Source: Tetramitus jugosus (Eukaryota; Protista; Heterolobosea). Taken from it: a stretch of 64,000 nt of DNA. This document shows positions 5,048 to 30,593 of this stretch, piece by piece. The notes under the pieces are model-generated. The model made no database searches. It was not told the origin of the DNA and saw only the letters and a list, made by a program, of their open reading frames with translations. How positions within the stretch are numbered: position 1 is the first letter of the stretch; each line of letters opens with the position of its first letter. The position numbers and the translations under genes are program-made. The stretch lies in assembly GCA_937625935.1 (NCBI GenBank), contig OW569386.1:355932-419931 (forward strand), written 5' to 3'.

Positions 5048-6212
5048 TTATTTACCACCAAGCACCTTTGGGAGCACCCCGCCCAACACTCCTCCAGTTA
5101 TCAGTACTACCAGAGCAATCAAGGCAGCGATCACACCAACAACAACCAAGAATGTGCAAGAACAAGCCCTGGTCTTTGACGCCATTTTTCGGGCACTCTT
5201 CAGATTACTGATTCCCGACTCCACATATGATATACTCCTCTCAACGTTGTGCTCTATATTGTCCAATAAATCACCTTGCATCTGTAAAAGTGCGTGCATA
5301 TCCTGAAACATTTCGTGAAGCTCCTCCATGGATTCTTCCAATCTGACCAAGTCATCATGTGTTTCCTTAATTTGATTATAAGTCGCCTTTATCGTGTGAC
5401 CATCAGCTGCATCCAACCTCTGAGAAAACACTGTTTCGAGTTGAATTTCGCCCTTGTCCACCTTTTCTTTAATCTCCTTCTCGCTCATTTCATCTCCCAC
5501 GGCTACCTTAACTAACCGCACCAAATTATTCTTGTAGCTCTCTTTGTGATCCACCTGTACATCATTGTATACGGTCATTGCTGAAAAGAATTCCTCTGTT
5601 AGTGATGCATGCTGGTTCTGTCGAATTCGTACCTCAGAACTATTCTTCTTCTCGGAATTTAGCTTCTTATTGTCTTCTCCCATCTTGTTCAGAGCCTTCT
5701 TCGTCTCTGATAGATCGCTCTGCAATCGATCTTCTATTTCTTTGGCATCCTGTTTCATTTCTATTCATTGAATATGTCACACACATGCTATTCGAAAAAC
5801 AACCCATATCAACAAACAGTAGTCACTTACGCTTGGATTTCTTATCACTCTGAGTCGATGATTCCATCTTTTTATATTGCTTTCTTAACAGCTCAGTGTT
5901 CGTCTCTATCCGCTCAATCAACTCCTTTACTTTGCCTACTTCAGAGTAGAAAGCATCGAGGAACATGGAGTCTTCAGGTATGAGTTTTCCATTGTTGTAC
6001 CCTCCACTTTGATTCTCCAGGTCTTGATTCATGATATCATCGAATTCAATCTGATCTAAATCATCATTCTCATATTGGCCTTTGCGCTACATTCAACAAG
6101 TAGTCAGTCAAATGATGTTAGGAATTAAGTGCTTTTAGAACTCCTCATATGAACTGGAAAACGATTACCAATGAACAGCACATACGCTCAAATCTTTCAT
6201 ACGGTCCTTCAT
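5048..6212 (-). CDS. Plasma-membrane-type syntaxin (Qa-SNARE), 3 exons
   Basis: N-peptide MKDRMKDLS, Habc helices, SNARE motif HDDLVRLEESMEELHEMFQDMHALLQMQGDLLDNIEHNV, C-terminal TM. GT-AG introns at 6185-6087 and 5830-5761 join the exons in frame. Confidence 0.92.
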
Positions 6213-24684: not shown

Positions 24685-27468
24685 TTATTCATGTTGAGGT
24701 CTTAGAGATGAGAAAAGATTGAAGTAAACTGCCAGGGCGCACAAAAGAACAACTAAGGCAAAGATATAGTACCATTTCTTGCTTCCTTGTGTTGTTCTTC
24801 TCTCGAACAATCCCTTCTTGATTTCCTTGTAATCAGCAGCCAATTGAATACTTTGATTTTCGAGCAACAAGTATCTCTCAAATCTAAATTGCTTCAATCC
24901 TGTGGTAGAGTCGATTGAGCCCAAATTGACAGGCTTCAAACCTGCGGTTTCACTAACACCAGAGAAGAATCTAGACATTGCACCTCCACCGACAGCCTTT
25001 GACTTCTTCAAAAATTGGTGAGATCCAGATTCGAGTTCCGCAGTTTGATCTAGCAACCTGTCCAGTTTTTCACCTCTGTTCAAAATAGAGGAAAGATTAC
25101 CATCCAACATCGATTGTACAGAACCTTGAGGAGAAGAGCGGAAATACTCAACTTCCTTGATATCACCTACGAATTCTGAAAAGTTAAAGTCTTTGGGGAA
25201 AAAGAGACTCAGGTTCATAATGTTGATGGGTGAATCGAATTTGGCGAGATTCAACTTGAAAGTTCCTCGTCCTTCCAACTTGTCAGAAGGTACAGTAAAC
25301 ACAAACTCTACGAGCATCGTATTACATGCATCCTTCTTATTCAATGGAATCAAAATCAATTTCGTGTCCTTTTGTGCTTCGGATGACGGTTTGACTGATT
25401 TTTCATCAACAGTGGTTGACCAGACTTCTGCACTCTTGTTCAATCGAATTCTCAAGTATTGCTTGGCAGTATTTCTAATGTACATCTTGATCTTGTGCAA
25501 CAACTTTCCAGATGATAGTGTAATATCGTAGACACATGTTTCAATACAAGCACACAAAACTTCTACATCGTCATGTCTTGTCACATTCAAGTGAAGTTCA
25601 TGACCCTTCTCCAAGAATCGATAGCTGTGCAAGATTGGATATGGCGACAGTCTTTGAACATGAGGAAGTTCAGTTGAGTCAATCTTTCTCAAAAACTTTC
25701 TTCCTTCTTCCTTGATTTCGACATTGGTTCTGGCGACAACGGCAATTGTTCCCGTTTCTCTGGTTACGTTTTGTGATGTCATTGATGGAGCAAAGACCTT
25801 GGCACTTGTTCCACCCATCTCCAGCTCCGTATTGATCTTAAGGTTCAATGATCTTTCGACGCCATACTTGAATTGGATCTTCAAGATTTTCTTCGAATGA
25901 GAATTCTGCTTGTTCAATTGTTCAGCATCATCCAAAGAGAGTTCATCTTCTGTCTCCAATTCCTTTTGATCATAGACACTCCAATCCTTGATATTACCGC
26001 CGCTGACGGACAAGACCTTGAATGGAGCTCCATAAGGATCAATCATAATCTCCAACTGATTCAAACTTCCATTCACAATGGAGTAATCAAACACGGCAGT
26101 AGATCGAACGAGTCCCTCACCAATGGCGTGTAAAATGTTTTGCTGAGAAGTCAGAGTCAAAGGCAATTGAACTTTCTTGTCGCTGTCCTCCTCAATCTTG
26201 ACCACATCGGGCATGAGCAATGGAATGGCCTGTGCTTTGATCTTTGGTGTCCAATTGATAGTCAAGGTACGAGTAGGTGGATAGGAACAAGTGACTTGAG
26301 TGAAGCATCGTGAGTCAAGGTCATCCTTATCGCTGTTACCTGTGGATATCTTCTTCTTTTGAACGTAGAGAGCTGGTGATACCTTGACTTGGACATCTTC
26401 ATGATGAATCTTAAAGTCCAATTCGTTCTTGACAGCTTGAGAGGCAAAGTAAAGAACAATGGATCGAGGAGAAGTCGAAAAGTCGTCACTCTGTGCCGAG
26501 TAGGATGCAAAGGTTGATGATTTGCATGTCGACTGTGATGATTGTTGAGATCGTTCAATCGACACGTCAACCACGAGTTGAATATGATACAGTCCTGGCT
26601 CGCCGCACAACATGACAATCGAGTTATTCAGAATACCGATATGGCACGCAAGATCATCCATATTATCATTCAATTGTTCACTTGAATTCTTTGTTTCTTC
26701 TGCTTCTTCTTGCTTCTGCTCTGGTTCACTCTTTTCATCTTCAGCCAACAATGGTTGTTGTTGACGTCTAATGAGGCACTTCTTGAGAGACACATTGTTA
26801 CAGATTTGTTCCAACAGTGAAACCTTTGTCCAATTCTTTCTCTTCCACTTTTTGCCCACGGAACCAAATCTCTTTCTCCACAATTCCTGTTGATATCTCA
26901 CAATGACATTCTCCAACACATCAACATAGAAATCCAATGTGAAACAAGCACCCATATGCTTCTTGATCACTTGTTCAACATTCTTGTTGCTGCTATCGCC
27001 ACTCGTATCGTTTCCAACTGAACTCAACTCTTCACCCGAAACAACAATCTTGTTGATAATGTACGGTTCTTGAGCATCGACATTGGTCATGGCAGCACTT
27101 GCTCTCATTGCAAACTGCTGCAACCACTTTTGTTGTTTATTGTGTTGCTCCAACACCTTGAGGAATGAGTCCAAGCTTACAGTAACTGTTGGTTCATTGG
27201 CAGCAGCAGCTGATGAGGCAACCACTTGTGTTGTTGGACCTGCTGATGAGGCAGCTACAGTGTAGGAAGAATGAGGTGGAGGTGGAGCTTGAGGAGCCTT
27301 TGACCTCGCATTCTTTGGCTTACCGAATAAATCACCACCAGATGGTTGAGCATCACTCCAATCACCATCATCTTCATCATAAATGCTCTCTGAGACGCAC
27401 GTCTTTCGAGTGACCCATGGGTTAGAATTGATCTGTCTGTCTAAAGACTGAAGAAATAGTTTTTTCAT
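24685..27468 (-). CDS. Large tail-anchored beta-rich protein (paralog A) with embedded R-SNARE motif
   Basis: Colinear similarity to 27753-30593; SVQSMLDGNLSSILNRGEKLDRLLDQTAELESGSHQFLKKSKAV at ~24991-25125; C-terminal TM WYYIFALVVLLCALAVYF. Start is taken as ATG 27468. Confidence 0.85.
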   Translation of the reverse strand: MKKLFLQSLDRQINSNPWVTRKTCVSESIYDEDDGDWSDAQPSGGDLFGKPKNARSKAPQAPPPPHSSYTVAASSAGPTTQVVASSAAAANEPTVTVSLDSFLKVLEQHNKQQKWLQQFAMRASAAMTNVDAQEPYIINKIVVSGEELSSVGNDTSGDSSNKNVEQVIKKHMGACFTLDFYVDVLENVIVRYQQELWRKRFGSVGKKWKRKNWTKVSLLEQICNNVSLKKCLIRRQQQPLLAEDEKSEPEQKQEEAEETKNSSEQLNDNMDDLACHIGILNNSIVMLCGEPGLYHIQLVVDVSIERSQQSSQSTCKSSTFASYSAQSDDFSTSPRSIVLYFASQAVKNELDFKIHHEDVQVKVSPALYVQKKKISTGNSDKDDLDSRCFTQVTCSYPPTRTLTINWTPKIKAQAIPLLMPDVVKIEEDSDKKVQLPLTLTSQQNILHAIGEGLVRSTAVFDYSIVNGSLNQLEIMIDPYGAPFKVLSVSGGNIKDWSVYDQKELETEDELSLDDAEQLNKQNSHSKKILKIQFKYGVERSLNLKINTELEMGGTSAKVFAPSMTSQNVTRETGTIAVVARTNVEIKEEGRKFLRKIDSTELPHVQRLSPYPILHSYRFLEKGHELHLNVTRHDDVEVLCACIETCVYDITLSSGKLLHKIKMYIRNTAKQYLRIRLNKSAEVWSTTVDEKSVKPSSEAQKDTKLILIPLNKKDACNTMLVEFVFTVPSDKLEGRGTFKLNLAKFDSPINIMNLSLFFPKDFNFSEFVGDIKEVEYFRSSPQGSVQSMLDGNLSSILNRGEKLDRLLDQTAELESGSHQFLKKSKAVGGGAMSRFFSGVSETAGLKPVNLGSIDSTTGLKQFRFERYLLLENQSIQLAADYKEIKKGLFERRTTQGSKKWYYIFALVVLLCALAVYFNLFSSLRPQHE

Positions 27469-27752
27469 TTTGTGTGCTAGGCAATCCGTGTAAGGTCGTT
27501 TCTGTGTTGTTCGTTTTGCTTTCTTGAAAGCTTGTGCCAAAAGAACTTTGTCGACGAATCGAGTTCCAAACTCAAAAATTTTTTGTTCGCCCCTGATCTC
27601 TGCATTCTGATGGGCACGAACTTCACTGGAGGAACAGAACGTAGAATCGCCCAAGTTCTTTGTGAGCGAAAGAACAAACCACAAAAACAACAAAGAACAA
27701 GTAACAAGCAACAACAAACCAGTAGAGTATTCCTTGTTTATTTGTGAAAAAA
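27469..27752. promoter_or_regulatory. Putative bidirectional promoter between the two paralogs
   Basis: 284 nt separate the divergent ATGs; an A/C-rich leader precedes each start on its own strand. Confidence 0.5.
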
Positions 27753-30593
27753 ATGGACCCACAATCATCGTCTGCCAATACAGCTACAACTGCTGCTGCT
27801 GCTGATCTCAATTGGACTGAAAAAGACTCTGTCAAAGTTCCAGTCTCACAATTCCTTCCCTTGTTGACCTCATTCGATGAATATCAAGATAAACTGTCTC
27901 ACATTGTCGATGGAGAACAATCAATGAACCCGTTGGACGACAGCAGTCAACCACCTGCGACTCACTTGGTTCAAGAGTTGAGAATTGGCGGAAAAACGAA
28001 TATGCGCCAAAATTTTGTACAGTTCGATTTGGAGTTCCGTGTGAGTGTTCTGGTCGATCACTACAATACTTGTCCATTGATTCCCATTTCCAATTCGATT
28101 ACAGTGCTGGACTCTCGCGTTCAATTGTTGAAATGGGTGGAGAATAGCAAGAACAACAAGAATACCAATAAGCAAACAAGCACATTGTCGGCAAGTAACA
28201 CTGCATCAAGCTCATCCAGTGATGATGACAATAATGAACAACAAGATATGCAAGTGTTGCCCAACTATTTTGATAGTGTGGTTGATAGCAACGCAACAAG
28301 AGAGGCATCTGATGAAAAGAATGTGCCATCTTCCTCGACAAAGTCACCTCTGGACACTCACGGAAGAATCGGGATCGTTTCTGCTTGTCACTCTCTCATC
28401 TCTCGTGGAAAGGGACTCTATTCCATTTTCTTTACCATCTCTGTTCCATTTTTGACCAAACAGAAGAGAAGTGTAGAAATGACGTTGCCACGTCAATCTG
28501 TTGCTGCTAGAACTAGAATGACTGATTTCTCTATTCAAGGCGATATGCAAGTTCAAGTTGAACCTAGTACATACCTAGAAACAAAGGTAATTACCAAGGG
28601 AGATAGCAGCACTACGTCCAACAACAGTATCAACAATGCACTCCTGAATTTTGATGACGATGAAGATGATACTTTGGATGAAACCATCGATTCACATGAA
28701 ACTGTTATCGTAGAATGTATTTTACCTTCTGTATCTCATCTCACAATCTATTGGACTAAGAATGAACCAAAGAAGGAAGAAACAGAAACACCTGATAAGA
28801 AGGTGGAGCAAGTCAAGGAAAGGAAGCCATTGACTGTGAATGTTGATCAATATGCACTCCATTCTGTGGGAGGTGGAATCGTGAGCACCAGTGTCGATTT
28901 CAATTTCCAGATTCACAATGGGTCCTATGACACCTTCTACATTTCCATGAACACACCAAAGAAGAGTGATAAGAACATTAGAGTTCTGCGCGTTGAAGGC
29001 AGAAACATTAAGAAATGGGAGATGAAGAAGTTGAGAAACAATGAGAATGCAACAGCTAGTGATGCAACATCCGAGTCTGGCATTTCAAACGCCACCTCCA
29101 ATTCATTCCTCACTGATTCTACACTATCGTCTGCGCTGGGTAACTCTCTTGAACAGAGCATTTGCAAAGTCACACTTGAGACCGGAGTGGAAGGTAACTA
29201 TCAACTAAAGTTGTTCACAGAGGTTGATATGGATGGTGAGAGTGCAAAGGTGCACATACCTACTTTTGCCTGTCTTAACGTCAATCGTGAGAAGGGTTTC
29301 ATTGGTATCGAGGCAACATCAAGCGTCGAGATTAAAGAACTCTCTTCAAGACTGACAACAAAACTCGACACTAGAGAGTTGCCATCTGAGATGACAAACA
29401 AGGCTTCTGATCAATTGATTCTAGCGTACAAGTTCCTTCAATCAAAGGGTGTTTCTCTCTTTGTCGATGTGAAGAAGCATGATGACGTGTCTGTATTGGT
29501 AGCTGTGATTGAAGAAGCTTACTATGAGGTTACTTATTCCGAGAGTGGTCACTATTTGTATCGCGTGGCATTGAAGGTGAAGAACTCGAGTCAGGATTAC
29601 ATTAAGGCTAAATTCTTGGACATTAACGATGATTCAAAGCAGATTCAGATTTCATTATGGAGTACAACTGTAGATGGAAGTGCATCGCGTCCAGCTCGAG
29701 ACAAGGAAGGATTTATCCTCATCCCATTGAAACGTTCCTCCAGCGAAACAGTATTCACTGTTGAAATGTTCTACTTGTACAACAACCACTCGGCCATTGA
29801 GGGAAAGGGAAGCCTGGAACTCTTCTTCCCTACATTCAACACACCGATCACTCGAGGTTATTACAATGTCAACCTTCCAGACGACTTCAACTATGGAGAG
29901 TTTGAGGGAGACATTAAGGAGTGTAAGAACTGGGAGAAGTACCCATCTGTACTTGGTACAATTGCATATGAAAAGCAAAAGCTTGCGTACAATAACAACA
30001 ACAATAACGCAAGAATGCCTGTACAAATGCAACAACAACAACAACAAATGCAACAGCAATACGCTATGCCGCAACAAATGCAATACGCACCTCAGCAACA
30101 GATGAACTACAATGCCATGAACATGGTCCAACCACAAATGGCTCAACAAATGAGAAACGCGCCAAGACGACCACTATACAATATCAATGCCAACTTCAAT
30201 GAAGATGACGATGAGCAATACAATGACTCCGGGTCTGACAATGACGAAGAAGATGAAGCCCTTTCAGAGTCTGACGAAGAGCTAGAAGAAGGAGGTGAAG
30301 TGAACATCTCGAACAACTTGAAATCCTCTTCCGTTGTTGGTGTACTGCCTATTGTATTGAACTCTGTGAGCAATGGAAAGAATTTCAAGTTTGAAAAGTT
30401 GCTTGTTTCTGAAACTGAGCCATCACAGCGTCTTCATGTCGAATTCAAGCAGATTGTAAAGTCATGGAGAGAGAAGAGAACTTTGTGGAGACAAGACCTG
30501 GCTGCTTGGATGAAATACAAGAGATACTTGTTTTTGGTGGTGATTCTGCTTGTGGTTGTTGCGATTGTATCTCGCTTCATCAGAAGACATTGA
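27753..30593 (+). CDS. Large tail-anchored beta-rich protein (paralog B) with Q/N-rich and acidic insertion
   Basis: 946 aa from ATG 27753; shared blocks with paralog A; C-terminal TM YLFLVVILLVVVAIV. Confidence 0.85.
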   Translation: MDPQSSSANTATTAAAADLNWTEKDSVKVPVSQFLPLLTSFDEYQDKLSHIVDGEQSMNPLDDSSQPPATHLVQELRIGGKTNMRQNFVQFDLEFRVSVLVDHYNTCPLIPISNSITVLDSRVQLLKWVENSKNNKNTNKQTSTLSASNTASSSSSDDDNNEQQDMQVLPNYFDSVVDSNATREASDEKNVPSSSTKSPLDTHGRIGIVSACHSLISRGKGLYSIFFTISVPFLTKQKRSVEMTLPRQSVAARTRMTDFSIQGDMQVQVEPSTYLETKVITKGDSSTTSNNSINNALLNFDDDEDDTLDETIDSHETVIVECILPSVSHLTIYWTKNEPKKEETETPDKKVEQVKERKPLTVNVDQYALHSVGGGIVSTSVDFNFQIHNGSYDTFYISMNTPKKSDKNIRVLRVEGRNIKKWEMKKLRNNENATASDATSESGISNATSNSFLTDSTLSSALGNSLEQSICKVTLETGVEGNYQLKLFTEVDMDGESAKVHIPTFACLNVNREKGFIGIEATSSVEIKELSSRLTTKLDTRELPSEMTNKASDQLILAYKFLQSKGVSLFVDVKKHDDVSVLVAVIEEAYYEVTYSESGHYLYRVALKVKNSSQDYIKAKFLDINDDSKQIQISLWSTTVDGSASRPARDKEGFILIPLKRSSSETVFTVEMFYLYNNHSAIEGKGSLELFFPTFNTPITRGYYNVNLPDDFNYGEFEGDIKECKNWEKYPSVLGTIAYEKQKLAYNNNNNNARMPVQMQQQQQQMQQQYAMPQQMQYAPQQQMNYNAMNMVQPQMAQQMRNAPRRPLYNINANFNEDDDEQYNDSGSDNDEEDEALSESDEELEEGGEVNISNNLKSSSVVGVLPIVLNSVSNGKNFKFEKLLVSETEPSQRLHVEFKQIVKSWREKRTLWRQDLAAWMKYKRYLFLVVILLVVVAIVSRFIRRH

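Follow-up and report, generated by a model that had tools for sequence, protein, structure and literature searches.

A Loop-Borne R-SNARE-Type Motif in a Tail-Anchored Beta-Sandwich Protein of the Heterolobosean Tetramitus jugosus

Introduction

Can a motif of the kind that VAMP proteins use in membrane fusion lie inside the body of a large, otherwise unrelated protein, at a distance from its membrane anchor, and what could it do there? The question is raised by a locus in the genome of the heterolobosean protist Tetramitus jugosus (assembly GCA_937625935.1), within a stretch of 64,000 nucleotides of contig OW569386.1 (positions 355,932 to 419,931 of the forward strand) that is called the window here, its coordinates being used throughout. 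A gene on the minus strand of the window, which we name gene A, encodes a tail-anchored protein of beta-sandwich domains in which a VAMP/synaptobrevin-type R-SNARE motif had been noticed from the sequence alone (the original prediction). Below we consider whether the motif is what it seems to be, in what kind of protein it resides, how old it may be, and which explanations of its presence are compatible with the evidence.

Identity of the R-SNARE-Type Motif

The motif consists of 44 residues comprising layers -4 to +8 and is encoded at positions 24991–25122 of the minus strand. These correspond to residues 883–926 of the open reading frame (ORF) of gene A and to residues 780–823 of P0001, a protein of 924 amino acids that is 99% identical to gene A and is encoded on a 2.8-kb contig (L003) from another sample. 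Against the Pfam profile Synaptobrevin (PF00957), which has a gathering score of 26.4 bits, the whole ORF scored 31.0 bits (E 2.2e-7), its last 204 amino acids 36.3 bits (E 5e-9) and P0001 28.9 bits, the match in gene A covering positions 14–57 of the 89 in the profile. Pfam returned no Q-SNARE or other coiled-coil family at the same segment, even at E values up to 10. A hidden Markov model (HMM) built from 14 R-SNARE motifs of the same genome gave the motif 27.7 bits. Among solved chains its best relatives are endobrevin/VAMP8, Nyv1, VAMP4 and Ykt6; in a gap-free alignment with endobrevin all 13 layers from -4 to +8 are identical or conservatively replaced, including the Arg of the zero layer, which gene A encodes with an AGA codon at positions 25075–25077 of the minus strand (ORF residue 898).

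How far can a match of this strength be trusted? When PF00957 was searched against the entire 26.35-Mb genome in six frames, 15 matches emerged, namely 13 ordinary R-SNAREs, a tomosyn-like gene and gene A; because all other matches are of R-SNARE type, the profile yields no evident false matches in this genome. Two features nevertheless set gene A apart from fusogenic R-SNAREs. The 16-layer motif (-7 to +8) is incomplete, since layers -7 to -5 are absent, the position of layer -5 being occupied by Gln with Pro and Gly upstream. Moreover, 72 residues, among them two confidently modelled beta-strands, separate layer +8 from the transmembrane helix, so that the geometry of fusogenic proteins, in which this helix directly follows the motif, is not found.

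In most respects the original prediction has therefore held: the profile search agrees with the R-SNARE assignment, the zero-layer Arg is where it had been placed, the motif has a conserved core block on either side and its N-terminal layers are degenerate as described. It had extended the motif to 25128, which gives the right peptide with two codons too many (Gln-Gly), and had correctly separated the motif from the membrane anchor while counting about 65 intervening residues instead of 72. Judged by its sequence, the segment is a bona fide R-SNARE-type motif of the VAMP7/VAMP8 kind, set in a non-juxtamembrane position of a tail-anchored protein.

The Host Protein and Its Family

The AlphaFold model of the gene A protein is a chain of beta-sandwich domains with a mean predicted local distance difference test (pLDDT) of 65.5, rising to 80–90 through most of residues 330–770. 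A Pfam scan found no family for this body, and a feature search of the ESM Atlas gave no informative name. Foldseek searches of the PDB proposed Ost1/ribophorin I, PIG-T and the legs of integrin alpha, which we discarded because their TM-scores of 0.1–0.34 reflect a generic likeness among tandem beta-sandwiches. A profile built from 14 members of the family was then used to search 1.8 billion proteins, retrieving 6072 cluster representatives at E<=1e-3, or 2205 when the threshold was tightened to E<=1e-30, with gene A belonging to the family by full-length similarity. Many members are multi-repeat proteins of at least 2000 amino acids. Those with a name are all called 'hypothetical protein', and the few checked by name are bacterial, coming from metagenome-assembled genomes labelled Acidobacteriota, Verrucomicrobiota, Deltaproteobacteria, Pseudomonadota or simply 'bacterium'. 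The family to which the body of gene A belongs is mostly bacterial, and of bacterial origin or affinity.

Signal peptides are found at the N-termini of bacterial members, which are secreted. They are lacking from the eukaryotic members, all of which fall into a single clade (support 100/99) and have either a tail anchor or a CaaX box at the C-terminus. One of them, P0046 (748 amino acids, from a Logan contig), terminates with the CaaX box CVLM in place of the tail anchor. The membrane face occupied by the eukaryotic proteins would thus be the cytosolic one, on which a SNARE motif could be active; the CaaX box of P0046 supports this placement. As a separate observation, residues 1–20 of the family member P0007, from a Paramoeba aestuarina MMETSP transcript, resemble the N-terminal tail of histone H3, and this sequence may be a chimeric transcript assembly.

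The motif of gene A is hosted by a variable loop of the last beta-sandwich domain, encoded at 24940–25167 of the minus strand (P0001 residues 765–840). A loop of 53–145 amino acids occurs at this site in all 14 family members compared, bacterial ones included. In the two AlphaFold2 models that we obtained, its pLDDT is about 30, and the second, made for the C-terminal 365 residues, contains a lone helix of low confidence at P0001 residues 782–809. Within the loop, flanks of about 15 and 17 residues enclose the 44-residue motif; from this geometry, the loop would be long enough for a 44-residue helix to extend with the flanks spanning its length.

Orthologs and Age of the Motif

If the loop is variable throughout the family, when did the R-SNARE motif arise in it? 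Two other proteins carry part of the motif at the same site. In P0003, whose gene lies on a 20-kb contig of eukaryotic origin and whose overall identity to gene A is 53%, layers -4 to +4 are present, the Arg among them, and the PF00957 score is 21.2 bits. The more distant P0070 (31% identity) retains the stretch from layer -5 to about layer +3, again with the Arg; it reaches 23.6–26.3 bits with PF00957 and 33.3 bits with the HMM of the genome's own R-SNAREs. Comparison of gene A with P0070 gives about 32% identity for the motif and for the whole protein alike. In all three carriers the layers, the invariant Arg and a Glu two positions further on have been kept in a loop that otherwise defies alignment, as expected if selection acts on a SNARE-type helix.

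In the maximum-likelihood tree the proteins of subfamily A form a clade with 100/100 support, within which gene A and P0002 are sisters (100/100) and the remaining six make up the sister group of P0070 (88/84). The motif carriers thereby bracket the non-carriers, which are P0002 and the proteins of three Naegleria species. Since partial motifs at the same site in P0003 and P0070 enclose the non-carriers, the motif is ancestral to subfamily A, and the simplest history is one gain at the base of the subfamily followed by different deletions in each lineage. Conservation among orthologs, which the original prediction had offered for checking, is accordingly partial: P0003 and P0070 retain a portion of the motif at the same loop, P0002 and Naegleria have deleted it. 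The idea that the motif was grafted into gene A as a recent event is not supported. Its identity to the genome's own R-SNAREs is only 27–37%, the best being 37% over 43 residues, on which ground we rejected a recent transfer from a resident VAMP gene; moreover, the loop varies in all members and the orthologs have partial motifs. Further orthologs did not emerge: a word-based search with P0070 returned P0070 alone, the C-terminal 190 amino acids used as query for ortholog fragments gave no match, and a metagenome locus scan recovered the same species only. The motif is thus an ancient but unstable element of subfamily A, so that it becomes harder to argue for a new regulator that cells cannot do without.

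Possible Role of the Motif and Alternative Explanations

The most economical reading of the motif is a non-fusogenic role like those of tomosyn and amisyn. Specifically, gene A could provide an R-SNARE-like module that is anchored in the membrane and, without driving fusion, would bind Q-SNAREs to act as a decoy or a tether, a proposal to which we give an even chance. The mechanism might run as follows. The motif was acquired at the base of the gene A subfamily, not recently. Facing the cytosol, the tail-anchored protein would display it in the disordered loop of the last domain, where it would pass from disorder to helix on binding the R position of a Qa/Qb/Qc bundle. With a Q-SNARE complex on the same membrane the outcome would be a tomosyn-like competitor or decoy; with one on another membrane, a tether resembling the bridges between Sec22b and syntaxin. 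Complex prediction for residues 765–836 of P0001 with three Q-SNARE motifs of the same genome, namely Qa L020 (Syntaxin_2 type), Qb L031 (Vti1 type) and Qc L024, gave a score of 0.88 in three runs; the score dropped to 0.00 with the partner swapped, yet was still 0.78 with the partner kept and the Qc chain swapped, so it is unspecific and speaks neither for nor against binding.

Fusion itself requires the force of zippering to be transmitted through a short, stiff link into the transmembrane anchor, and SNARE assembly nucleates at the N-terminal layers. In gene A the link has 72 residues and contains a folded element, and the N-terminal layers are absent, which makes a fusogenic role very unlikely. 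A bolder version of the non-fusogenic proposal, which we advance only tentatively, is that subfamily A represents an unrecognised, ancient class of membrane-anchored R-SNARE proteins, in which a scaffold of beta-sandwiches, bacterial in origin, would hold out a truncated R-SNARE helix on a loop so as to clamp or sequester Q-SNARE acceptor complexes or to build contacts between membranes. The repeated loss of the motif in Naegleria and in the species of P0002 would then mark the rewiring of a trafficking step.

Several observations weigh against a working Q-SNARE ligand, and most of them feed the main rival explanation, according to which the ancestor of subfamily A had a functional motif that later became dispensable, the species of the window keeping the least eroded copy, one that no longer engages any partner. 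Both AlphaFold2 models have very low confidence over the motif segment. The N-terminal nucleating layers are missing in all carriers, and lineage-specific deletions have struck different parts of what remains: P0003 has lost the C-terminal half (layers +5 to +8) and P0070 has a degenerate one, so that both keep the N-terminal half; P0002, the closest ortholog with 67% identity, has deleted the N-terminal half and the zero layer while keeping a part that aligns with the C-terminal one; and the three Naegleria proteins have lost the centre of the motif with the zero layer, retaining at most weak remnants of its flanks, a suggestive resemblance only. With carriers bracketing non-carriers on the tree, these deletions imply that the function is dispensable in several lineages. 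In addition, the run labelled X1, probably the source sample, contains a second contig over 24916–25135 that differs by 16 letters and lacks 3 nt at 24991; its depth is 36 versus 51.6 for the reference form. This second form is about 7% divergent exactly over the SNARE loop; a similar bubble occurs near 26976–27013 (about 26948–27067), and the 1.9 kb between the two divergent spots are identical. Such divergence over the motif suggests relaxed constraint or allelic divergence. A relic of this age would hardly be expected to match endobrevin through 13 consecutive intact layers, as the motif of the window species does, or to keep its layers and Arg across orthologs that are just 31% identical and have otherwise unalignable loops. 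Furthermore, three strains differ within the motif by one synonymous and one Lys-to-Arg change, although the changes are too few for a test by the ratio of nonsynonymous to synonymous substitution rates (dN/dS). Overall we consider decay a possible but doubtful account.

Rather improbable, in our judgement, is convergence, in which an amphipathic heptad helix would have evolved in the loop, for example for self-association, and would resemble R-SNAREs by chance or composition. The loop is indeed variable and disordered across the family, the match extends over just 44 residues and, on the full protein, exceeds the cut-off by only a few bits, and no potential donor in the genome exceeds 37% identity. 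A chance resemblance would, however, have had to pass a curated cut-off that only R-SNARE-type genes pass in six frames of 26 Mb, and to reproduce the brevins position for position in the series Arg-Gly-Glu-Lys-Leu-Asp and in the small or hydroxyl residues at +3, +5 and +7. It is also at odds with the lack of any score for Q-SNARE or other coiled-coil families in Pfam, and with the independent matches of three orthologs.

An assembly chimera or mis-join that placed a VAMP fragment in an unrelated gene, which the original prediction had itself named as a possible refutation, is refuted for practical purposes by contigs from four runs of four studies that cover both motif borders, poly-A RNA included, and by orthologs carrying the motif at the same site. 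Among these contigs, one from oligo-dT RNA spans 24763–27064 with no gap or joint, and others come from a soil metatranscriptome and from groundwater DNA. Two Joint Genome Institute (JGI) contigs, L003 and L048, carry the whole of gene A in collinear order at 98.4% and 97.7% identity, respectively. The gene A stretch is present in 20 public runs from 15 studies, nine of the runs being on record as RNA; this evidence consists of contigs and bears on presence and continuity, not on expression level or strand. Gene A is real and expressed.

Should the proposed binding of gene A to Q-SNAREs be true, it would have consequences beyond this locus. The protein would be an independent example of SNARE regulators evolving by domain capture, and it would open a first functional approach to a very large family without annotation. 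The orthologs would amount to a natural deletion series (full motif, N-terminal half, C-terminal half, none) for asking which layers suffice in regulation.

Organization of Gene A and Its Paralog

The mechanical ORF of gene A has 1027 codons (24685–27768, minus strand). Its true start is most likely the Met at 27459, because P0001 has 924 amino acids and contig L003 is collinear with window positions 27494–24660 (98.4% identity); the coding sequence would then occupy 24685–27459 of the minus strand, with 924 amino acids plus the stop, as transcript-like contigs indicate. The upstream extension at 27460–27768 (minus strand, 103 codons) overlaps the region of the start codon of paralog B and is probably untranslated, leaving a shared divergent promoter of about 293 bp. 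A hydrophobic stretch in this extension was considered as a signal peptide and rejected, since the transcript-like contigs start downstream of it, the extension overlaps the start of paralog B and no ortholog has such an N-terminus. A hydropathy scan of the gene A protein reveals a single, C-terminal transmembrane segment and no signal peptide. The tail-anchor helix lies at 24712–24774 of the minus strand, corresponds to a helix at residues 894–918 in the P0001 model and is followed by eight C-terminal residues. Between it and the loop comes a core block conserved across the family (24784–24939, minus strand), in which two beta-strands rejoin the last domain (P0001 residues 855–865 and 872–879, pLDDT 73–86) ahead of a basic juxtamembrane stretch. 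The closest named relatives of gene A, with 40–43% identity, are proteins annotated as hypothetical in Naegleria fowleri, N. lovaniensis and N. gruberi.

Paralog B (27753–30593, plus strand) is divergent and head-to-head with gene A, and shares its core and tail anchor, being 30% identical over 583 amino acids (E 1e-57). Its loop is 145 amino acids long, rich in Gln and Asn and acidic; a Pfam scan found no SNARE motif in this loop and no match for paralog B.

Other SNARE Genes of the Genome

The tomosyn/Sro7-like gene (G000:C6:349901-353461; L047:302-3862, plus strand) encodes 1186 amino acids with WD40 beta-propeller matches and no transmembrane helix, and its C-terminal Synaptobrevin motif scores 30.1 bits, level with the 31.0 bits of gene A. 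The window itself contains, at 5051–5758 of the minus strand, a syntaxin of plasma-membrane type whose best solved relatives are syntaxin-1A and Sso1/2; elsewhere the genome has genes of Syntaxin_2, Vti1 and syntaxin-6 type. Two syntaxin-like frames (L025:673-1620, plus strand, and L027:1489-2079, minus strand) have CaaX-like ends, CIMM and CSLM, and no transmembrane helix, and several R-SNARE frames (L014, L015 and L016) have Cys-rich or CaaX-like tails. All of these frames with CaaX or Cys tails may encode lipid-anchored SNAREs.

Comparison with Known Systems

Proteins that possess an R-SNARE motif and do not fuse membranes are few, among them tomosyn, amisyn and the non-fusogenic complexes of Sec22b, and are known mostly from animals and fungi. 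Amisyn (STXBP6), a regulator of small size without a transmembrane helix, bears its R-SNARE-like motif at the C-terminus and competes with VAMP for Q-SNAREs. It differs from gene A in its PH-like N-terminal domain, in the lack of transmembrane anchoring and in being metazoan; the protein is named in PMC8377282. Tomosyn/Sro7 (STXBP5), like gene A, combines a large non-SNARE body with an R-SNARE-type motif that is not placed for fusion, and its VAMP-like domain sequesters syntaxin, inhibiting the formation of SNARE complexes (PMC2568027). Tomosyn, however, is a soluble protein of WD40 propellers with a full motif at its extreme C-terminus, whereas gene A has beta-sandwich domains, a tail anchor and an internal loop motif without layers -7 to -5. 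Pfam finds no WD40 or Lgl match in gene A and its model is all beta-sandwich, hence it does not have the tomosyn/Lgl architecture.

With brevins and longins such as VAMP8/endobrevin, VAMP7 and Nyv1, gene A shares the layer residues from -4 to +8, the Arg at layer 0 and the tail anchor, but it has no longin domain, and fusogenic R-SNAREs have all 16 layers and a transmembrane helix within about 10 residues of layer +8. The contacts between Sec22b and Stx1 are instructive because a membrane-anchored R-SNARE pairs there with a Q-SNARE on another membrane, forming a tether without fusion (PMC7928305); unlike gene A, Sec22b is a canonical longin R-SNARE that is also active in fusion, and its non-fusogenic state depends on its partners, not on its architecture. 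In the CD225 domain of IFITM3 and PRRT2, a SNARE-like segment interacts with cellular SNAREs and regulates fusion (PMC11730294), but this motif is a short mimic that the Pfam Synaptobrevin profile does not see, in small proteins of other taxa. What is new in Tetramitus is an R-SNARE motif in a new architecture: internal, borne on a loop and carried by a tail-anchored beta-sandwich protein.

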